Assembly (NCBI RefSeq): GCF_021869535.1
Contig: NW_026262581.1
Location: forward strand, 80,476,001 to 80,540,000
DNA from: Mytilus californianus
Lineage: Eukaryota
Direction of reading: 5' to 3'
Length of the DNA stretch: 64,000 nt
The notes beneath the pieces are model-generated. The model was not told where the DNA came from. It made no database searches and was given only the letters and a program-made list of their open reading frames with translations. This document shows, piece after piece, positions 1,144 through 61,043 of this stretch; position 1 is the stretch's first letter; every line of letters starts with the position of its first letter. A program made the position numbers and the translations under genes.

Positions 1144-3959
1144 TCATTCATCAATTCTTTATACTTGGAAATATAATTTTGCTTGGAGTTATAGTTTCTA
1201 AAAAAAGTATTGTCTTTGAAAGAGTTGACATGTTGCAATGTACATTTATTCTACATAGTTCTATGGTACCAAATCAAAAGTTTATATTAAAGAAAGAAGT
1301 CAAAGGTTTCCCATCATAGTTTAGTTACATACATTTTTTTTGTACCTGAGGTCGTTGAATATAGATCATTATATAAATAAGGAGATGTGTTATGATTGCC
1401 AATGAAACAACTATCATCCATACATTGTACTTACCAGTAACAAACCACATTTGCAAAGTTGAATAAAATACAGTTGATAACATTTACTTATTACTAAAAA
1501 GAAAATGCCAAACTATTTTAAACAGTATTGGACTATAAACATAGATAAAAAAGGTATAAACTGGACATAATGCACTAGTTTATAAACAAGTGAGAACAAT
1601 CGCCTTCATATAGTGCTCAGAATATTACATTCATAAAACTTTTTCAATATCATTAGAGAACTCTAAATCTTAAATACTGAAAGCCACCTCTGATAAGTAC
1701 AATGTACTATGCAAGATAATGATATAACTGGACTAACAATACACACAACCTGTAATTAACTGCCTTTACAGCGCTTTCGCGCTTTGATTGTATAATGCTA
1801 TAATTTGCCTTTGGTCGTTTTTTTTTCTTGCTATGGCATTGTCAATTTGTTTTCGACTTATGAGTTTGAATATCCTTTTGGTATCTTTCGTCTCTCTTGA
1901 GATGAAAAGACAATTTTTGACTTCATTCCGTTAACGACGGTAACTGATAATCCACTGTTTGCCAACTTTCATTACGATGCATTTAAAATTGATTTCAAAA
2001 GGAAGAAATTAAATTAATGTCAATTTGTTCATATTTCCAATCACTTTTCAGAAACTTTGGACGTTCTTATGTAAATTGAATATGGGGAACTTTTGTTCTT
2101 TATGCAAATTGGTCGGTTCTACAAATTTTGTATGTTCTGAAGTAACTAAATGAATTAAAATCGTACATGCGTTGCATGTCATATGAAATGCTATTCAGCA
2201 AGATCACACAAGGAAGATATTACATTGTGAAGTGGAGCAACTAACTGAGCTAGAAAGAGAAATTTAATATTTGTTAAAGTGTTTTACCATAAATCATTAA
2301 ATTATTATTGTTCATTAATTTTGCGCTAATCGGCATATGCAAAAGTTTCAATAGACTTAGTACATGTATGTGTATTTTTAAAAGGAAATTACAGTTTTCC
2401 ATATAAAAATTAAGGCGTTCTAGTAATTCTGTGCTTCGTCCGTTAGTACCGTGACATCATTGAGTTAATTTGGTATTACATGTACTTTTCCAACATTGAT
2501 GATAACAATTAAATGTATCCAAACAGTCGCCTAGAATTATCAAAACTTTTATGAAGGATATATAATCCTTGGTCTAATTTTTAAACTTCAGTATCATGTT
2601 ACTTTTTTGCAACAGGTGGTCGGTTCCCCGATAACTATGCAAAACAGGTCAATATCTGCAAGGAGAATATGATGCTTAATTTTCGATCCTTGGTAACTGA
2701 AAGACAATTCATCAATATTTGCTTAATTTTCAAATCATTAGAATTCTGATGACCCGTAAAAGAACACCTATATACAAAAACTGATCTATTTCCTTTATTT
2801 ATTGTTCGAACCTAAAATCTTTTCTTTTTTTTTTCGAAATACATAAGAATTCCAGCATTATATTAGCATGCGCATACCGTTACAGACAAGTTCCAGATTA
2901 ACAATCACCCCTTTTTTAGTTTTTTTATGTTGCAACTTAGGTGATCGCCCTGAACATGCATGAAATATTTGACACAGGACATAAGCAATCAATAATGATA
3001 TAACTTAGAATAAATACTAGAAGCGATATTCGTTACATTTCAATTGTGAGATCGTCGTGTATGAAATTTGACCATCCGTGAAAAAATATGACTTGATACA
3101 TGTACTTCGATATTGAAAAAATGAAGGAGAGAATGTTTCAGTTGTTTGGAAATCCCTATAACAAAGCATGTCCAGATTTGTGAACTTTTTAATCTTAATT
3201 TTCGCTTTATCTCCGTGACAATATCAGCACTCAAATCGGATTTCCCTGTACTTTTAAAGATATTAAGAGTTAAACTATTTTTTAATTGGAAAGAAGACTC
3301 TGAGGCTACAAACTTTAATTTTAATCGATTTTGTATTTACAAGATTGCATGCAGTTTCCATTTATCATCAATGAATTTGATTAAAATATTTCATTCCATC
3401 AAATCTAGAAGAATTATCAAAATTAAATCAGTTCGCTTTATTTTATTTAGATTACTTAGAAATAAGCCTCTCTTAATTGTTATGTCAATTTTACGCCTGC
3501 TTATTTCAGCGTTCAAAGATAACAACACACAGAGAGTTTGATTGATATTAGATAATAACTCCACTCCATATACGTTTTCAATATTTTGTGACACTGGGTT
3601 TTAAAATGGAATTAGTGTTTGTTGAGCAGAAAAGGAAATTAATCAGCACCTGTTGTCAGTGCTTGCAAAACCGTAACAAACAATTCAAGAACACGCTTTG
3701 ATAAATCATTATTTATAGTACATTTATTTATGATCTTGATTTTGATAGAGTGTGTTTCAAAAGTGAAGTATAAATTAATGATACACAATTTGATAGAGAG
3801 GAATAATTTTGAAAGTTAAATCTCTAGATGTATTTTCTAATTTTTGTGTTCTTCTGTTTCCCTCTCATTGACGTATAGATCTCAATTCTTTTCAAACGGG
3901 TCTAATGCTGTCTTAAGCATGTTATGTGAAGTTTTATTCGTATTCGTCAAAAGAGAAAA

Positions 3960-4170
3960 CCAACGCCCTTATTTATGTTTAAATCAATAAACCAAACGCC
4001 AATATAACAGACTGCAACAAACGGCAACCGCTGAATTACTGGCTCCTGACTTGGAACAGGAACAGAAATAATGTGGCGGGTTTAGACATATTTGTAAGTA
4101 CTCAAACTTTCTCTTAACCTGGGACAATGGTTTAACTGCAAAACATAATAATGTAAAAATCAGTTGAAAA
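3960..4170 (-). mobile_element. Decayed short repeat carrying a degenerate twister-like core (4028-4130)
   Basis: Minus strand reads ...CCCGCCACATT...TTCCTGTTCCAAGTCAGGAGCC, preceded by a TGAGTACT(T)A palindrome remnant. Homologous to 28873-29463. Confidence 0.55.
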
Positions 4171-5659
4171 TACGTGCTGTGTTGAATTTGACTTCAAAAC
4201 ATCACCGGCAGAATAAAGTTAAAAATAGAATTACTAGTAGACCCTGTTGATACTGAATTTTTTTTAAAGGAAAGGGTTAGAAACTAGAACTTTTCATTAA
4301 AATTTTATAGATTGTGTGTTTTGTTTTTTTATCTACCGATTAAAATAACTATTTCCTGGAGCTTAGCAATTCTTGATTCATTAAGTTGCAATAAGTTCTA
4401 ACTAAAAGGGCAATCTAATCAACAATTTAATTTGTGAATCATCACATTTGTTTTAGATACTGTCTAATTTTAAATAAGACAAACATCGACAAAAGTTTAA
4501 GAGAATTCAAACGTACTAATTACATAATATGCATGTTAAAACTTACAAAGTCGGTGAAATGCTAGAACCACTGCTGCTCGTGACCGAGGTTGAACATATC
4601 GTAGAAGAACAAGTATTTAACAGGGAACCAGTACAGCAAAATTCATTTGACGTACATGTCAGCTCTTGGTAGGTATTACTGCTATCAGTATAGCTACAGT
4701 TTGTCGTTGCCATAGCATAGAAGCATTTTGACTAGTGTCTGAAAAGGAACAAGAAAAAAACATTATTTTTTTTCTATTGACCTGCTTTTTTATCCATTTT
4801 ATAAAAATATGGAGATGAGGTATGATTGCCAAAGAGACAACTATCCATAAAAGCACAAATACAGAGGATGTAAGCAATTGTTTTCCTTCTGTAGAATGTA
4901 TGCATAACAGAGTTCTCGAAAAGTGGTAGTCCAAAAGTTTTGACTACCAAAATTTTGCAAAGGACCAACACATTTTTGGTATTTTGCAATTAAAATAATA
5001 CTGAGGACCAGCAGATTTTCGTCAAGGACCACCAGAGATAAACGATTTTGAGAACTCTGGCATAATACGCTTAAGATATTTGGACCATTATAAAAGAGCA
5101 ACCATCATTTCTACCATGATTTATTATTATAGTATTGATTCAGAAGTTTATTTTGAAGGAGTTTATTGGTGTGTAAACTCAACCTGAATTATGTCGGGAA
5201 GACTTCGACCTATGTATTCCAGTGAAAGGTCCAGTTTACACATCGATATTATAAACTTTACTACAACGAACCTAATCAAATTAAAATAAAATGTACGAAA
5301 ACTGCGCACAGATCGAATATTTGTCTTAGATAGATGATTTTTTAGTAGTTGTTATTGGCTTTGAACTAGCTGTCAGTAATTGCGAGTACTCTCAGATCTG
5401 TACTTTAAGTCTTTTTTGTTGTGAGGGATGTATAAATTCCCTGCCACGTCCGTTATGTATTTTTGTTAGATGTTTTTCGGCTTTGTATCGATCTGATGGG
5501 TTTCTCAATTGAATTGTTTTATATTTTTCATGTCGGGGCTTTTTACAGACGACTATGCGGAATGGGTTTTTAACCATGCCACATCTCCGTATTTTTATAG
5601 GTATTTTGCCTGTTTAGGAATTCATACTCGTGTCGTAATGATTTCAGTTGAAATGACGC

Positions 5660-6090: not shown

Positions 6091-8696
6091 TACATAAATA
6101 CATGTATCTGCAACATTAAAATTCAGAACTGGTTTTAAGACTGAATAAATTGTATATCAACGGTTTTACCTATAGAGATATTTTGTTTCGTAATGTGAGT
6201 TAATTAAAAAAAAATATGCGATAATTCCCACAAAAAGTTGACGCACCGGTAGATTTTAACAAAAGCTCTTTCTTATCCAGGAAATTAAGTTAAAACATTT
6301 AATGTTCACATTCTGACAATCATAATGTCTCTTCTAACACTTTATTTATCAGAGGTATGGAATGACGTCTTATGATCGATAAAACAGTTCTTGCAGCAAT
6401 CAATTATTCATAATAGATATCATTTGTATTGTGATAAATCTTTGAATTTAAAATGCTATATGAAATCTTTACAATCAGGCTAATGGTTAAAACAAAATAG
6501 TCTTTTATTTCATGTCTACGGCTAACATACTAACACTACTTCCTCAAAATTTGTTTTAAGAATTAATAATTCATTCATTTGAAGGAAATTGTTTGAAAGT
6601 TTTTCATTACCAATATTTCTCTTGTTGTAATTCTCCAGACTTTTAATTGAGAATTCAAATTTCAAATTGCAATATCTCTAACAAAAATGTTTGAATTGTT
6701 AATGTTCGTCGGAAAAAATGAAACTGAATTGATCAATCAGTCTTGGAAGAACACTTTATTGAGATTCAATACCTGTTTTTTCTTAGAGTGCCATCAATTA
6801 GTTTCAATTTACAACGAAAAATTAATTACAGTAACTCGTATCTGCAATAAAAGGGATAATTTGACTGGAAACAAATCACTTGCAGAAATATAACTCATAA
6901 AATCGCATAATTTACAAATGAAGAGTGCATTCAAACACGTTTCATCTTTAATCAACTAAGAGAACATAAATGTTTTAAACATGAATTCTACTTGATGCTA
7001 AAATACTATTTTTATCTGCAAAATCAATTTTAAACACAATTATACAAAAAGTAAAGGAATATTTAACACATTTCTTTACATAAAGATGTAGAAATCGAAA
7101 CGAAAAAGCTTTCAGAACAGTCATTTTTCATGAAAGCTGTCAATCTCTCCGGTACACTGCACACAAAATTATAAGCATACATATGTATTCGTAAGAAACA
7201 TGCAGAAACATTTCACATGGGTCATGCTGTCAAAATGTGGAGACCATCTGAGGTTAGAACTGATATTAAGTCTAAAGTCCTTTGTTTTTGTTTTACTGTA
7301 GCTAGGGGTATTCCATATATTTTGTAGGTCGCGTCACATAATGTGCGTCTGTTTGTGTTGCGCAGTACTCCACACTTGTCGAGGTTGAAGGACATGGCCC
7401 AGTTTTCTTACCGTTCTTGCCACATATCCAACTTATTGTGAGTTCACTGTACCTTTTGAATGTTTGGAGTTTCTTCACTGGTCAAGATAACAAAAGAGGC
7501 TGTAATCGTATAAAAAGTACATGAAGTCCGCCATAAGTTAAATTTTAGTTCCAGTCTGGAAACTCGTTAGTTCAATAGTTGTCGTCATTCTATATATCTT
7601 CATGCAATTTATTTGACGTTACTAGCAGATCTTTAATAGCTTATGTCAAAATAATTCCATGTCTAGACTTGTAAAGAATAAGTGGTGTTCTGTTAAACGT
7701 TTTTTAAATGTTGTTTGTTCATTTATTTTCGTCATTTCATTCATCAACAGTTTTAAGTCAAAGAGGTATCTGACATTAAAAGAAAGGTTTCGTATCGAAA
7801 TTATCTTTTTTTAAGTACTCCTTATATAAGGCGATGTAATCACGGGGTGGGGAATTCTACGAGAAAAGGATGTACCAACGAATACAAAAGAAAAACACAT
7901 GAACCAGATATACTATCTTGGTACAAGCACTAAATGTATATGGTAAATACACTAAACTATAAACAAAACAAAAACAAAAAAAACGATAAAAAACGAACAC
8001 ATTCCTTTTCCCTCCATGAAATTTTCAACACCACATGTTACATGCAAAACATACGGAATCCGACCATTTACGTAGCTTTAATTGTTTCAAATTTTACCAA
8101 TTTCTATTTAAATTTGATACATTTGTGTAGCAGGGATTGGGGCGTAATTGATCGAATGGTTTGACGTCCTTTACAACCCCTATAGTATACTCTTTCCCCT
8201 GAATTTGCAATAAGAGATAGGTCATGCATATTCGGTATGATGTACAACCTGGACCATTAAGAGTATTAATTTTGTTTTGAAAGAAAGTGAGTCACCGGAA
8301 AATTAAATGTACATGTTACTAATTGTAACATACAGCTAGGGTTTTTACTGTGTATAATTATTTACTTAAACAATACGGCTGTTTCCTTTGTTATTAAAAA
8401 CATATATATTAAGTTATAACGGGTAACATTTTTTCACGATCATTAGTGTAAACATATTTTATTAAAGAAATCGTTATGTATAGCTACAAGAGTAAAGAAA
8501 TAAATACGAAATATACAAGTGATTCAATAATTGGGATTAGGAAACAAGAGCGGTGCTCTTATATAATTCCGTCTCCCTTTTCACGATCATTAAAGATTCT
8601 AAATTATGGTACTTAGTAAAGCCAACAAAAATCATATCAGAAATATAAATCAATTGTTTTAAAAACAATTGTAAACGGTCTTTCCCCTCCGAAACA

Positions 8697-20704: not shown

Positions 20705-22464
20705 ACAATACAATACAATATGCTTTATTTAAAAACACTCCGTCACATTGACATGTGAAACAAGAGGTAAATATATACAAAATACAATCACATACAATCA
20801 TAGAAATAAATAGAACAACTTCGAAATGAAATATATTAATAATTACTTTACTTTATAATATTTTCGTTAACTTTGAAACGAACAAAGATACATTCTTAAG
20901 TACATTAATATTAACCAATGATAGTAGTCCTTTCATTTTTGATGCACTGGTATATTTAATATAGTATTCTGAAATGTGCTGATTTCTGATACTTTTTACT
21001 AATACAGAATTGCATTCAAATAAATAATGGTATTCATTACCAATAGCATTTAAACACAAATTACATGTCCTCTCGTCTTTTGGAATATTGTACCATCTAC
21101 CCAGCTCTACTGGAATTTTTACATTACAGCATCTTTATTTTGAAATATATTCACGTTCGATTGGTGATAATTGTACAAGATAGTTTTCTAAGCCAAACAT
21201 TGTTTTAAAAAGACCATAAAATTCTCCTCTGGATGAGTTGTCAATTTGATTATGCCAATTTTGAATGAATGCATCTTTAAGTTTTTCTTTCAGAACGATT
21301 TTTAGTTGATTTACATCTAATGGTAATTGCTGAGTCCAAACATAGCTCAGTCCGGAATTGTCTAAAATCGATTTAATATAGTCAATCCATTTGAACATGT
21401 CTTTTAAGTTGAACATAATTTGATAAAGTATACTGCTTAGTTTATTTTCATTGGCGAGAAGTTTGTTCCAAAAACACACCATTCTACATTTTATTATGGT
21501 ATCTATTGGTGTACGACCAAGTTCTCCATATGTCATAATATTTGGTGTCGAGGATCTAATTTTCAACACATTCCGGCAAAACTGTAGTTGGATTTTTTCA
21601 AGCATGTAATTGTTTCCGAATCCCCATATTTCACACCCATATGTCAGAATTGGAAGTATAAGTGCATCAAACAGCTGTAATTGTACGTCGACAGGTATTG
21701 AGAGGTTACGTATCTTTGTATAAAGACTAAAAAGTGCTTTCTGTGCTTGTTCGCTAAGACGTTTCTTCGCTGTTTCAAATGAACCATTGTAGTTAAAAGT
21801 TAGTCCTAAATATGGATAAAAATCTTGAATTCCAATAGACTGGTTAAATATTTGAAACTTTGGTAATGTTCGTGATTTCCGTTTGCAGAACACAACAACC
21901 TTTGTCTTCGATAAATTAACATTTAACTTCCATCATACACAGTATCTTTCAAAAACATTTAAGGCTTGTTGCATTGATTCGGCCGTTTCAGATATAATTA
22001 TATAATTATAGTGTCGTCGGCGTACAAAAGAACGAAAAGTTTTATATAGATATGCAAATAATTGCGGCAAATATTTTCCATAACTTGCAAGTTTTGAAAA
22101 TCATTTTCAGCAAAGAAAGACTCAAGATCATTTAGATAAACAGCAAATAAAAAGGGGGATAAATTTTCTCCCTGTCTCACTCAATATTCGCCTTTTGTAA
22201 TTTTATCCATAAAGATGTGTGACAGATTGTGTCAAAGGCTCTCGAAAAATCAACAAAAGTGCAAAAGAGTTTTTTTTCCAAGAGCTTGATAATTGATATT
22301 AATGAATGTAATACACATATGTTATCCAATGTACTATAACCTTTTCTGAATCCTGTTTGAGCCTCGGAAATCAGATTGATCTCAATTGAAAGTTCCCCGA
22401 GTCTTTCATTTAAGATCGATGTGAAAGTTTTTCCTAGACATGACACTAAAGTTATTGGTCTGTA
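20705..22464 (-). mobile_element. 5'-truncated, decayed non-LTR retrotransposon (RTE-X-like RT plus C-terminal zinc-binding region)
   Basis: Motifs YRPITLVSCLGK, QTGFRKG, FVDFSRAFDTI, RQGENLSPFLF, LLYADD, YPYLGL, then CNLC...EYHYLFEC across frames. Internal deletion near 22180; stop at 20853; AATAAA followed by an (ATTGT)n tail at 20705-20729. Confidence 0.9.
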
Positions 22465-23615: not shown

Positions 23616-25145
23616 CATAAGGCTGCTAACAATATCATTATTGTTTGACGTAAATTTTACATTGAGGTTCTGAAAAAGGAAATCAAGAATTCACCCAACA
23701 TTCCAACTGACTCCATTTTCAGAAAATGACATCTGTAACAAACATAAACTTTTAGCTATCTCTTTACAAGCAAAACCAAATACATTGTACAATGAAAGTT
23801 CCAACTATGTACTGGCTTGCAAAGCTGCACAAAACTCCTTACAAATATAGATTTATTTCTTCTTCAATGTTCCACTACTAAACTATATATTCTACTTACT
23901 AGTACACTTGGTATAATCAAAAACCTGGTAATAAATTGTTCAAATAAGGCCTTTGAATATAGTGGAATTAATTACTTTTGGAGTGTCAAAAATTCGTTGG
24001 AAGTACATGTACTTGATAAATTGCATGCTTATATTGGTGATTTCGAATTTGTTCAAAGTTTTGATTTTTCTACCCTATATACCACTTTACCTCATAATCT
24101 TACTAAGAAAAAATTCACACACCTGATTAAATGTGCATTTAAAAAGTCAGAATGCGAATATATAATTATGTTCAAACTCTTTTAGGTCATTTTTAGTAAC
24201 AACAAACAAAAGAACTATGTCAATTGGACCTGTTTTGATACTATAACTGCCCTTGAATTTTTACTAGATAACATTTTTGTTCGCTATGGAGATTCCGTAT
24301 ATCGTCAAGTTATTGGAATTCCCATGGAGACTAACTGTGCACCACTTATTGCGGACCTGTTTCTGTATTGTTATGAGTTACAATTTATGACTAAAATCAG
24401 CAAAGACCCATCGAAACAACACCTGATTCCAAAATTTAATAACAATATTAGATATTTAGGTGATATATTGGCTCTCAATAATGACGACTTCAGTATGTAC
24501 ACTAAAAAGGTTTATCCTGCCTAACTGACCTTAAATAAAGCTAATACTAACAATGAACACTGCCCCTTCCTGGATCTTGATATCTATATCTTTAACGGGA
24601 AGCTTAATACCAAAATTTATGACAAAAGAGATGATTTTTCATTTCCTATTGTTAATTATCCATTTTTAGATGGTGACGTTCCCTTGTCACCATCTTATGG
24701 TGTTTATATATCTCAACTTGTTCGATTCGCTAGTGTATGTAACAACGTATTTGATTTTAACGAAGGAAATCTCATAACTGAAAAGTAATTACACCAGGGT
24801 TTTCGATATCACAAACTAGTCAAAACATTTACTAAATTTTATCATCGGTACAATGACATCATTCGTAAATATAAATCAACATGCAGACATCTTATACGTT
24901 CAGGTATTTCACATCCAATCTTTTATGGTAATATTCTTTACAAAGCACAAAAATGTCGGCATTCACCTCAAAAGCTAACCAAACCTTTAAACAGACTTAT
25001 TCGGAAGGGATATAGTTACGATACTGTTGTCAAGTCATTAAGAATTGCATATTTTGGTACATGTATTAATATTGATTCACTCATAGGGTCTTTGCATCGG
25101 AAATAAACACATTTATTCTAAAACCAGTTGTTGGCATGCTACGGG

Positions 25146-25234
25146 TTATGTTCTTCTCATATATTTTTTGATGGTATGATGCTAAACCCCTAACGGAATG
25201 GATTGTACTTGATTTTCATATGATTAAGACATAA
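25146..25234 (+). promoter_or_regulatory. SECIS-like element (form 2-like) in the 3' UTR of the Penelope-like element
   Basis: UGAU (25169-72) / UGAU (25210-13) quartet. Helix II GGUAUGAU/AUUGUACU. AAA at 25184-86, 11 nt after the quartet, followed by a CC/GG mini-stem. Helix I UCAUAU/AUAUGA plus UUAUGU/ACAUAA. The base before the core is U, not the usual A/G. Confidence 0.7.
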
Positions 25235-25426
25235 CACATAATCTTTCAATCAGTTTAATTGAGGTCTGGAGCTGGCATGTCAGTAACTGCTAGTAGTCCT
25301 TTGTTAATTTATGTATCATTGTCATTTTGCTTAGTTTCTTTTGTTACCTATTCTGAAATTGGACTCGGACTTCTTTTAAACTGAGTTTTACTGTGCGTAT
25401 CGCTGTGTGTTTCTTTATTCTACATT

Positions 25427-25518
25427 GGCTAGAGGTATAGGGGGAGGGTTGAGATCTCACAAAACATGTTTAACCCCGCTGCATTTTTGCGCCTGTCCCA
25501 AGTCAGGAGCCTCTGGCC
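25427..25518 (+). ncRNA. P5-type (circularly permuted) twister ribozyme fold; predicted cleavage U25471^A25472
   Basis: GGCUAGAGGU(P5)-AUAG-GGG(P2')-GAGGG-[palindromes]-U^AA-CCC(P2)-C-GC-U-GCAUUUUUGC(P3)-G-CCUG-UCCCAAGU-CAGG(P4)-A-GCCUCUGGCC(P5'). The core matches, position by position, the Oryza twister core as I recall it. Confidence 0.82.
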
Positions 25519-25759
25519 TTTGTTAGTCTTTTATGTTTTTTAATTTTAGTTCATTTATATGTTTTGGAGTTTAGTATGACGTACATTTTCACTGAACTAG
25601 TGCACATTTTTATTTAGGGGCCAGATGAGGACCACCTCCGGTGCGGGATTTTCTCGCTTCGTTGAAGACCCATCGGTTGCCTTTGGCTGTTATCTGCTCT
25701 TTGGCCGGGTTGTTGTCTCTTTGACATATTCCCCATTTCCATTTTCAATTTTACGACAG

Positions 25760-25888
25760 TTGAGGATACATATGTGTACAAAAGTGAAAAAATAAGCATG
25801 TGTAGCAACAGATGAAAAAATAAATGATTAATCAAAAAAAAAAAAATCATCCTGTTCCCTCTCCCCAGACTGTTAAATGGTCGTCCCC
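25760..25888 (+). mobile_element. Right half of the TIR MITE split by the Penelope-like insertion
   Basis: GTGTACAAAAG..GTAGCAACAGATGAAA..AAATGGTCGTCCCC followed by TTA, matching 63525-63633. Confidence 0.65.
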
Positions 25889-26375
25889 TTAAAACATACA
25901 GGAACAATAAGATTTTTTTTTTTAAATTCAATGTTGAATTTATTTTCTCCGCTAATTTTCAATGGAAACAAACACATTTTTTTTTCAATAACCTTGTGAA
26001 ACTATCATTGTTTTTAAACGTTCCACATCCGCCTCCCCACCCCAACCCCACCCCAAAAGATAAATGGTCGGTCCCTAATAATATTAGTTTGACACTAATG
26101 GACATACAGACAACGCATGTGGTGTCTTGAAAATACTTCGAGAATTCTGTATTAAGTTAACGTAAAATGTATTTCTGAGCACATTATATCGTAATTAAAC
26201 TATGCTGCAATTTTTCTGAAAAAAAAAGTTTTGTGTCTCCTTGACACAATAACCAAAAATATTATGAAGAAAGCGAAAATTAACAAACAGATGTCACTTG
26301 GATTTTATGTCATGGGTTTGCTGTCTACACGTATAGTCTACACTGTTCTTTTTTCAGATTCTGTTTTAGTTGTGT

Positions 26376-26402
26376 TTATTATTATTATCATTATTATTAT
26401 TA

Positions 26403-26439
<37 letters not shown>

Positions 26440-26460
26440 CATTATTATTATTATTATTAT
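26376..26460. repeat. (ATT)n microsatellite
   Basis: About 28 ATT/ATC triplets; this is the source of the poly-Ile ORF 26231-26464. Confidence 0.95.
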
Positions 26461-28872
26461 CTGAAAAAAAAACAATGTTACAGTCTCATATTTCTTTGAA
26501 AAAATACATTATTTCATAGAAGATTAATTTTAATTTTATATTCAACAAAATTAGGATATTGAACTTTAAAGTCTTTTGGAACTTTAACATTGAAACTACA
26601 AAATCGGTTACAAACAGCCTTACCTTATTTGATAATCATTTTTTGATCACTAACCAGTCCAACATTATGGAAGAAATTTATTTGAATACTGCTGTGATTG
26701 ACTTTCCGTGTTTCATTTCAGTGTCGGAATAGTTTTGAAATTCAATCATTCAAAAGTCAATAATGTTCTAGAGGGAGACACCTTCTGTCAATGGCTCATT
26801 TCACCGGAAACAAAAAGAAATACGTACGTACTAGCGACAAGCGATTAAATCCAAGTGCCATGTGATTTTTACGATGGAATAATCAATACTCACGAAATTT
26901 AAAAGTCGCAATGAACTCTTGTCCAAAGAAAAAAGTGTTAAATAATCGGAAAACTTAAAGCAGCATAAGGAATAAATCTGTTAATGTGTAACAAGGCTTG
27001 AAGATGAACATGTGAAATATGACGTTTCCCCTTTAATCAATGAAGTCGAATAAAAAACCGTTAACAAGATCCGCAAGTTAGGTTAAATGTCAATTAAACA
27101 TGATGGAAAGCCGGCGTGCCGCAGAGTTTTTACTGTTCGACATTTTGTTTTTTGTTTGGAATTCGATAGGTTGTAGAGAAATGACAGTTCCAGTAAAATA
27201 ATCAATAATTTAAATGTCAATTATGATATCTCAATTTCAATCTTTATATGAAAAATGGTTAATAATTTGATAATTTGTTTCAATATTTATGTTTACGATA
27301 TTGATAAAAGGCATTATGTAACATTATCGTTTTATTTAAGTTATTTATAAAGTAAGCATGAATTATTAACTATTATCATAACAACTAAGTGCAGTGTATA
27401 TTGTTTTCCATTTTTTTCCACTGGCGCGATTTGAAAAGTCATGACAAATTAACATGTTTCATTCTGGAGATTGTCTGATAATAATCCCTGCTTACGTCTA
27501 ATAATGAACATACGTGCCGACAGATTTTTTCATTGTAGTATTTCCTTTTTGTTCTATGAAAATGTTGTAAATAATACGTGCATCACTTGCATACAGTGTT
27601 TTACATGTCACGACTAATTTACTCTCTGTAAGTTTGTGATGATGACTTTATCTTTTTTTATCTACAGTATAGCTGGCATATATGACAAATGAAACGTTGA
27701 CTCCTTCAAGGACAGCACATGCTAGTAGTTCTGTAAATGGGGGCATTGCGTTTGAGGGTGTTGAAATAATTGCTGGAAGCGCATACATGTGTTGCATGTA
27801 TGTTTTTCGATATATTTATAGGGAAAATATCCCTTTAATAAACAGGTTAGTCTTAGAAAAAAATAAACTATGCTCATATTTGTTCCGAATGAAGCTTTAA
27901 AAAGTTGGTTTGCATTTTTGTTGACAAGATAATCATATAATACAGGCAAGTAAAATATATATTTTGATACGAAAAATAAGAAATCTGTATACCGTGATAT
28001 ACCAACTTTTGTGATCCTAGTAAACCACGAATTCGAAAGAACCACTAACCTTAAATGACCATGTCAAAAGTTTACCGAGGCTTTAAACAACATGAAGATT
28101 TGTAGTTGAAAATTAAAGAGTGATGTAACTCCAGTTCCCGTTCGTGATACTTCAAAATATACATATCTGTGTTTGGTTTTGTAATTCTAAATATATAATG
28201 AGTAAACTGCAGTGAGAAAAATAATGGTATGCTTATATTTGTGTGTAAACTCATTCACTTTCATTACGTCCGGTATCAGTGTTGGGTGAAAGACAACAGA
28301 TATACGTACATAATCAAAATGAAACTTTCGTCTCCTTACACGTATTGGATGATTATGATAATTTATCATAATTAAGTTTCCCAAACGAAGTTTAGAGACA
28401 TTTTTTCAGTTCGTCTTCTCCTAGGCCTTCTTCTTGTTTATTGCACCTGAACTAATTCACAGCTGTTTAGAAACCCTCCAGTCTACTTATGTTAAGGTCT
28501 TAAAATCAATTTTACTGCCTTTTTGGAAAGAGATAATAACATGTAATTTTGTAATTTACTGCTTAATTGGGCTAAAGAGGGTAGAGTAATTCAATTTGGT
28601 TATTATTTCACGAAATAGGTTTAGTTTGGGAAACCTTTTCTGTAAGCATCCTAACTGATTATTTGCTAGTCCCAAGGAAACCAAGGTAGTAATTGTTTTT
28701 AACATTAGACAAACTCCGTTTCGATTTTGGATATTATAATATTTTTCATAATAGTTGTATGATTTACTTCGCAAAAATACAACAATTCTTGTAATAAACT
28801 ATGTTTGCTTTTAAGTGAGCCCTACAAAATATATACACATTTTTTTTTTAAATATATTCAATGAATTAATAT

Positions 28873-60505: not shown

Positions 60506-61043
60506 TAAAATTGAGAATGGAAATGGGGAATGTGTCAAAGAGACAACAACCCGACCATAGAGCAAACAACAGCCGAAGGCCACCCATGGGTCTTCAATGC
60601 AGCGAGAAACTCCCGCACCCGGAGGCGTCCTTCAGCTGGCCCCCAAACAAATATGTATACTAGTTCAGTGATAATGGACGTCATACTAAACTCCAAATTA
60701 TACACAAGAAACTAAAATTAAAAATGATACAAGACTAACAAAGGCCAGAGGCTCCTGACTTGGGACAGGCGCAAAAATGCGGCGCGGTTAAACATGTTTT
60801 TTGAGATCTCAACCCTCCCCCTATACCTCTAGCCAATGTAGAAAAACAAACGTACAACAGTACGCACAGTAAAACTCAGTTTAAGAGAAGTCCGAGTCCG
60901 ATGTCAGAATAGGAAATGAAAGAAAATAAAGAAAATGACAATACTAGTATTACATAAATAACAACAGACTACTAGCAGTTACTGACATGCCAGCTCCAGG
61001 CCTCAATTAAACTGATTGAAAGATTATGTCTTCATCATATGAA
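60506..61043 (-). mobile_element. 3'-region-only copy of the Naiad-type element (truncated inside the SECIS 3' arm)
   Basis: Reverse complement of ~25215-25753 with high similarity. Confidence 0.9.
60743..60833 (-). ncRNA. P5-type twister ribozyme fold, second copy of the Naiad family; predicted cleavage 60790^60789
   Basis: Minus strand GGCUAGAGGU-AUA-GGG-GAGGG-UUGAGAUCUCAA-AA-AACAUGUU-U^AA-CCG-C-GC-C-GCAUUUUUGC-G-CCUG-UCCCAAGU-CAGG-A-GCCUCUGGCC; one P2 mismatch. Confidence 0.8.

Follow-up and report, generated by a model that had tools for sequence, protein, structure and literature searches.

The window, by which we mean the whole 64,000-nucleotide stretch of DNA that was analysed, carries on its forward strand a decayed Penelope-like retroelement of the selenoprotein-type Naiad kind, together with a short structured motif beyond the coding remnant (Table 1). 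The 3' end of the copy is sharp, at about 25752, and loose ends of RNA-seq reads at 25753 agree with it. When compared by tblastn with the RT frame of a full-length relative (L079), the RT remnant in the window aligns in three pieces at 87-96% identity. The copy is a dead, 5'-truncated insertion in which the motif is intact; because it lacks the endonuclease part, the designation 'Naiad-type' rests, for this copy, on its full-length relatives. The reverse strand carries, at 21135-22446, open reading frames of an unrelated LINE-like RT (…YADDTIII…), some 1.2 kb upstream of the Naiad copy.

Analysis of the full-length relatives gives an architecture that agrees with the earlier note, in which the element in the window was called Naiad-type. 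In L079 a single frame encodes a GIY-YIG-like N-terminus, a CNC motif, a DKA motif that stands for DKG, and then the RT, with TGA codons as its only interruptions; frame 1 reads ...IIYLLT-U-NKPGCGIQYVGETGR...EH... before it continues into the RT (motif read by eye). Three in-frame TGA codons of L079 stand at cysteine positions, and one of them is aligned with a cysteine of a related family (IVFVCK versus IIIV-U-RK). The GIY-YIG-like part is likewise N-terminal to the RT in L043, in the same order as in L079, and the site equivalent to the decayed SECIS-like element of the window scores 32.5 bits with SECIS_1 in that copy (L043, 3724-3788, reverse strand; cut-off 35). Pfam searches with two ORF pieces matched neither GIY-YIG nor RVT; the nearest Atlas clusters, which are language-model look-alikes, are invertebrate and carry HTH_animal, RVT_1 and GIY-YIG. 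The selenoprotein-encoding Naiads that Craig et al. 2021 (PMC8557442) describe from clams and spiders share this layout: GIY-YIG precedes the RT, UGA codons occur in frame where cysteines are conserved, and a SECIS comes directly after the stop. They too reach high copy numbers in bivalve-like genomes and lack a canonical hammerhead. Unlike the present analysis, that paper reports no ribozyme in Naiads beyond loose 'HHR core' strings, and a twister module is unmentioned. As judged from architecture, the full-length relatives are selenocysteine-encoding Naiads.

Genomic copies of the element show graded 5' truncation and a fixed 3' end. On several contigs they form tandem arrays in which the copies are exactly 4,020 bp apart and a 480-codon open RT frame is kept; this spacing falls within the 3.4-4.4 kb of Naiad units. 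The core of the motif lies 333 nt beyond the stop codon in L079, and in the window the motif starts 320 nt past the RT stop (TAA, 25104-25106), the distance that had been given for it earlier; the twister module is a constant component of the 3' UTR, which in tandem copies places it in the pseudo-LTR as well. In comparison with L079, the endonuclease part of a further, 5,586-bp tandem unit on contig C88 (L043, 5286-6302 versus 3846-5282, reverse strand) has only 38% identity, but the RT part 92%; the unit is chimeric and suggests that Naiad families have recombined.

Direct reading of the motif bore out most of the anatomy proposed for it in the earlier note. P5 has the predicted 10 bp, two G.U pairs among them, and the GAGGG, the U^AA, the GC of T2, P3, and P4 with a loop whose CCC is capable of forming T1 are all present. 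For T1, the loop CCC at 25497-25499 is complementary to the GGG at 25446-25448; for T2, G25478 and C25479 face G25502 and U25503, which gives one Watson-Crick pair and one wobble. The guanine G25444 corresponds to what we take, from published structures, to be the conserved active-site guanine of twisters. P2, described earlier as CCC/GGG, is present but is 4 bp long (GGGG/CCCC) rather than 3. At the base of P3, most copies and about 95% of RNA reads have C-G instead of U.G (25480 T>C). The statement that every twister element occurs here holds for the core, for P2 to P5 and for the pseudoknot partners, but not for P1, of which the intramolecular form is absent. A second copy of the same subfamily (subfamily A) lies on the reverse strand of the window at 60743-60834 and has one P2 mismatch (CCGC for CCCC).

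Table 1. Naiad copy and twister-like motif in the window, with the observation on which each assignment is based.
Feature	Position	Strand	Observation
Decayed, 5'-truncated copy of selenoprotein-type Naiad Penelope-like retroelement	23617-25752	+	Similarity to genomic copies begins at 23617
RT coding remnant with frameshifts, in-frame TAA 24787-24789 and stop TAA 25104-25106	23695-25106	+	tblastn
SECIS-like element, decayed, about 50 nt past the RT stop	25158-25222	+	Rfam SECIS_1, 20.6 bits
Whole twister-like motif, circularly permuted, opening at P5	25427-25518	+	92 bases
P5, 5' strand GGCUAGAGGU, partner 25509-25518	25427-25436	+	Duplex -23.0 kcal/mol, z -5.6 versus shuffles
Linker AUA between P5 and P2	25437-25439	+	Direct reading
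P2, 3'-side strand GGGG, partner CCCC 25474-25477	25440-25443	+	92% of P2 cells paired in 41 copies
Conserved GAGGG, with GGG 25446-25448 as T1 partner of the loop CCC	25444-25448	+	Aligned to GAGgG of RF02684
Palindrome 1, UGAGAUCUCA, in the position of a P1 strand	25450-25459	+	Paired substitutions across subfamilies
Palindrome 2, AAACAUGUUU, last base the predicted scissile U25471	25462-25471	+	CAUG to CUAG variant still self-complementary
U^AA, predicted cleavage U25471/A25472, then A25473	25471-25473	+	Aligned to UAA of RF02684
P2 strand CCCC, then GC (T2 partner of G25502 U25503)	25474-25479	+	Direct reading, Rfam alignment
P3 hairpin UGCA-UUUU-UGCG, 25480-25483 with 25488-25491	25480-25491	+	Direct reading
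P4 CCUG/CAGG (25492-25495 with 25504-25507), loop UCCCAAGU 25496-25503	25492-25507	+	98% of P4 cells paired
P5, 3' strand GCCUCUGGCC	25509-25518	+	Partner of 25427-25436
3' tail ending ...CAATTTT	25519-25752	+	68 matches to the terminal motif in genomic loci, unrelated flanks after it

The twister class was reportedly first described by Roth and colleagues in 2014. A covariance-model check, suggested earlier, returned Twister-P5 (RF02684, clan CL00120) as the only Rfam family matched on a 141-nt stretch, at 23.2 bits (E 0.0032), below its gathering score of 37.6 bits. The 58 positions of the model were aligned end to end, and every upper-case consensus position is matched (25444-25448, 25471-25473, 25478-25479 and 25495-25502), so that the core loop GUCCCAAG, the GAGGG, the U-A-A and the GC after P2 are all present. 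Type-P5 twisters consist, in order, of P2, GAGGG, U^AA, P2', GC, an optional P3, P4 with the loop UCCCAAG-N and an optional P5, and the motif is like them in all of this and in the partner letters of T1 and T2; it is unlike them in having two palindromes for the P1 hairpin, a G.U in T2 where the consensus has G-C, and a location inside a eukaryotic retrotransposon with thousands of copies. As a calibration, a canonical type-P5 twister with a P3 insertion and the same core pattern, from a metagenome contig (L107), scores 50.7 bits. The main visible difference between L107 and the window motif is the 8-bp P1 of the former, and the score deficit of the window motif is accordingly due essentially to the missing P1 and not to a poor core. 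A copy of subfamily B scores 18.3 bits with Twister-P5, also under the 37.6-bit cut-off. The speed filters drop the twister from Rfam scans of a 3-kb stretch and of loci totalling 20 kb, and narrow scans recover it; a whole-genome search with RF02684 gave no match among the only 79 of 35,978 candidates that were scored.

Between GAGGG and UAA lie 22 nt whose ends do not pair with each other, and the Rfam alignment skips the P1 of the model. A P1 built from the letters adjoining GAGGG and UAA was considered and rejected, as it brings U.U and G.G into opposition in all subfamilies. The minimum free energy of the P1 region is 0 for the monomer versus -15.4 kcal/mol for the homodimer. Across subfamilies palindrome 1 takes the forms GAGAUCUC, GAGCGCUC, GGGAUCCC, GGGCGCCC, GGCGCC, GGCGCGCC and UGGCGCCA, and the centre of palindrome 2 is either CAUG or CUAG. 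Pairing between copies is the simplest reading of these tracts, since a self-complementary centre has been kept that a hairpin would not need.

Exact matching of the core pattern GAGGG-N10-40-TAA-NNNN-GC-N3-30-GTCCCAAG to the 1.65-Gb, 175-contig genome gave 17,567 matches, versus 19 for the reversed control. The matches, like all sequences analysed here, are natural copies, and they fall into at least six subfamilies in which the core is unchanged and P3, P5, the palindromes and the flanks differ; subfamilies B-F are known from 8 loci and from the lists of pattern matches. P3 is CGCAUUUUUGCG, CACAUUCUUUAUGUG or a longer version, and the outer part of P5 is GGCUAG/CURGCC in subfamily A versus CCACUG/CAGUGG in B-F, either of which can pair. 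Standard pairs account for 96% of cells across 41 distinct copies, versus 30-50% with the partners slid by one to three columns, and shuffle statistics overstate the support because the copies are related repeats. Two-sided changes occur in these 41 copies at six pairs: three of the four inner pairs of palindrome 1 (across subfamilies), and one each in palindrome 2, P2 and P3, the last being a compensatory change from G-C to A-U in 7 of the 41. Variation in P2 and P4 is scant; T1, T2 and most of P2 and P4 contribute nothing to the covariation, since they are invariant and their letters are partly fixed by the pattern with which the copies were retrieved.

These observations make it very improbable that the resemblance to a twister arose by chance or is a decayed relic with no selected role. 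A score under the Rfam cut-off is what such a relic might have, and abundance alone is no proof of function because most copies are dead insertions; against this stand the excess of matches over the reversed control, the recurrence of one core in subfamilies that differ in P3, P5, palindromes and flanks and show compensatory changes, and the occurrence of the motif in L079 and L081, two copies in which a long RT frame is still open. Neutral drift from one recent insertion is likewise disfavoured by the sequence differences in P5 and P3. As the catalytic letters are invariant while the helices drift, master copies appear to be under selection for the twister fold, including the scissile dinucleotide. 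The motif is real and conserved, and the stretch is a genuine derivative of the twister class that resembles its members.

Members of subfamilies B-F are elements of about 570 bp with a homologous tail. Seven such units (L055, L059, L063, L069, L070, L073 and L074) lie at about 1265-1834 in each locus when oriented, and several begin at the same boundary, about 235 nt 5' of the core. In the seven B-F loci from L055 to L074, tblastn found no RT like that of L079 within 1.5 kb upstream of the twister, and ARAGORN found no tRNA gene. The B-F elements may be non-autonomous partners of the Naiads described above, or the tails of other Naiads. At 1420-1427 of L070 the sequence reads CUGAUGAG, a string resembling a hammerhead core.

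A scan of metagenomes with the core pattern returned 120 loci, almost all of them chance matches, and yielded two canonical twisters, L107 and L158. Three marine metagenome contigs (L130, L192 and L194) consist of tandem repeats of about 350-600 bp with one permuted twister each, in which P1 is a near-palindromic helix of 13 bp and T2 is AC:GU; they could represent a twister-bearing satellite or a retrozyme-like element. Another metagenome contig, L169, carries on its minus strand, at about 4055 along that strand (about 1700-1770 in plus coordinates), a relative of the Naiad-type twister that reads …UUUAAUCCCGC…CCUGUCCCAAGUCA…; the tract before its U^AA, AACCGGUU, is again self-complementary. 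No RT was found on the L169 contig.

Evidence on cleavage was sought in raw RNA-seq reads (four runs, two related organisms) and in the starts of genomic copies. The module at 25414-25558 is transcribed in both orientations at about 300-1100x, with flanks that vary between families; only the stretch 25418-25551 and the last 54 nt or so of the tail are common to the most expressed family, and loose read ends at 25418, 25551 and 25700 bound the parts that are shared between families. At 25471/25472 there is no place in any of the four runs where at least one fifth of the molecules start or end, and no drop in depth; the accumulation of reads starting at 25472 that had been suggested as a check was not seen in these runs. 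Undiminished read depth across the site gives no support to efficient, constitutive cleavage of the RNAs that were sequenced; a minority of them may still be cleaved unnoticed, since antisense transcripts and decayed copies dilute the signal.

It is accordingly quite improbable that the motif is a normal twister that works efficiently as a monomer, does without P1 and cleaves each sense transcript during transcription. Such a ribozyme would be consistent with the complete core and with the activity, in vitro and in reporter constructs, of P1-less variants from the 5' end of Perere-3 (PMC8501958), but in all four runs the depth at the site is full and no pile-up of ends reaches one fifth of it, and this reading leaves the maintenance of the palindromes by paired substitutions unexplained.

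Among approximately 10,000 subfamily-A copies, 9,699 have a U before the AA and 296 do not. The 296 are mostly point substitutions, and the first 100 of them include about 12 true breakpoints, approximately the rate at neighbouring positions, so that there is no excess of subfamily-A copies that start at A25472. A role in which the 5' end of the cleavage product becomes the start of the copy, as for R2 or Perere-3, was therefore rejected on the copy-start counts, and the motif is not a 5'-end-defining ribozyme of that type.

The absence of read-end accumulation in the four runs, the lack of a preferential copy start at the site, the missing P1 and the sub-threshold Rfam score all weigh against the claim, made in the earlier note, that the twister processes the RNA of the element. 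The same four observations fit the main rival explanation, which both negative cleavage tests favour: a compact, pseudoknotted fold derived from a twister would have been kept so that the RT encoded by the element could recognise it or prime on it, with the palindromes serving as an RNA dimerisation site as in retroviral genomes, and catalysis would have been lost or would not matter. Families whose 3' UTRs differ elsewhere have the module and the last 54 nt or so of the tail in common; this would be expected of sequences that the transposition machinery recognises in cis, and it too suits a fold of this kind. We nonetheless consider it rather unlikely. The letters conserved in Rfam, including the scissile U-A and the guanine of GAGGG, are unchanged in every subfamily examined while the helices drift, a binding scaffold has no obvious need for a scissile dinucleotide, and twisters without P1 have been reported to be weakly active (PMC8501958).

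Twisters of another retrotransposon offer the nearest precedent for catalysis with a reduced P1. The Perere-3/RTE element of Schistosoma mansoni carries twister variants at its 5' end (Liu et al. 2021, PMC8501958; PMC7761336), and twisters with a weak or absent P1 still cleave, inefficiently (PMC8501958). The Perere-3 twisters resemble the present motif in their twister core, in the weak or absent P1 and in being spread over many retrotransposon copies. They are unlike it in their position at the 5' end, in a cleavage site that coincides with the boundary of the copy and a target-site duplication, and in drawing half of P1 from the flanking sequence. The present motif lies inside its element, 320 nt past the stop and with about 280 nt left to the 3' end; the copy boundaries lie off the site, and the host is Penelope-like, not a LINE.

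The second precedent comes from canonical Penelope-like elements, whose pseudo-LTRs contain hammerheads (Cervera and de la Pena 2014, as cited in PMC6765202); small hammerhead variants associated with Penelope-like elements cleave as dimers, according to the title of Lunse et al. 2017 as cited in the same review. These minimal hammerheads are like the motif described here in the kind of host, in their location in the terminal repeat region, in a helix reduced to a short palindrome and in the tandem arrangement of the elements; they are unlike it in belonging to another ribozyme class, and dimer dependence is demonstrated for them and inferred here. For Penelope-like elements the 2019 review of retrotransposon ribozymes names hammerheads and no other class (PMC6765202), and in the part of the literature that was covered nothing ties a twister to Naiads, to other Penelope-like elements or to bivalves, in line with the earlier note, to which no twister in Naiads was known.

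On balance we favour, with a probability of about 0.6, the reading that the motif is a twister-class derivative in the 3' UTR of a Naiad and cleaves itself at U25471/A25472, the cleavage being promoted by pairing between two copies. Cleavage between U25471 and A25472 would proceed by the usual twister chemistry, and the cutting would process multi-copy or read-through transcripts of the element, as has been proposed for the hammerheads of other Penelope-like elements. P1 would be replaced by the two self-complementary tracts, whose palindromy would be maintained by the paired substitutions. A lone copy would probably cut weakly, and the pairing of two copies would promote cutting; the partners might be two RNAs or two pseudo-LTR copies within one tandem transcript. 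The predicted activity is thus possibly dependent on the pairing of two copies. A stricter version, which we offer tentatively and at less than even odds, is that this Naiad twister, with its P1 replaced by palindromes, is on only when two RNAs or two terminal copies pair, and is in this respect convergent with the dimeric hammerheads.

The favoured reading bears on the question of hammerheads in Naiads. According to the earlier note, Naiads had been reported to lack canonical hammerheads, and this is indeed stated by Craig et al. 2021 (PMC8557442). It further proposed that a twister is used in place of the hammerhead. For the element in the window this agrees with the Rfam search of 24000-27000, in which the Hammerhead families gave no match up to E 10; as a generalisation it is limited by another Naiad-like RT family, which has a hammerhead-like motif. 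The RT of this second family (L043, 8728-7286, reverse strand) is 45-49% identical to that of L079 and has a Naiad linker region upstream. After it, at 6505-6549 on the same strand, lies a motif of the minimal hammerhead type found in Penelope-like elements, which scores 22.8 bits with Hammerhead_1 (cut-off 34), has a palindromic CGCG in helix III and contains one extra core base. An Rfam scan of L043 6400-7150 reported no twister. Some Naiad-like lineages here may therefore carry a hammerhead-like motif.

Penelope-like elements are the retrotransposons closest to telomerase, and the mechanism by which they are copied is unsettled. Naiads are the most abundant clade of Penelope-like elements in many invertebrates. 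To our knowledge, hammerheads were thought to be universal in Penelope-like elements until Naiads were reported without one, and the existence of hammerhead-less Naiads prompted the view that these elements can do without the ribozyme, or that it is no more than a parasite. The twister described here, if its activity is confirmed, would be the first tied to Penelope-like elements and a natural example of a twister that has pairing between copies in the place of P1. For annotation, the Rfam cut-off misses thousands of sub-threshold twisters in mollusc-like genomes. A conserved twister in this position would, if the reading is true, restore the rule that the terminal repeat of these elements contains a self-cleaving RNA; the stricter version, if true, would further suggest that a self-cleaving RNA dependent on pairing is needed by the whole class, whichever ribozyme supplies it.
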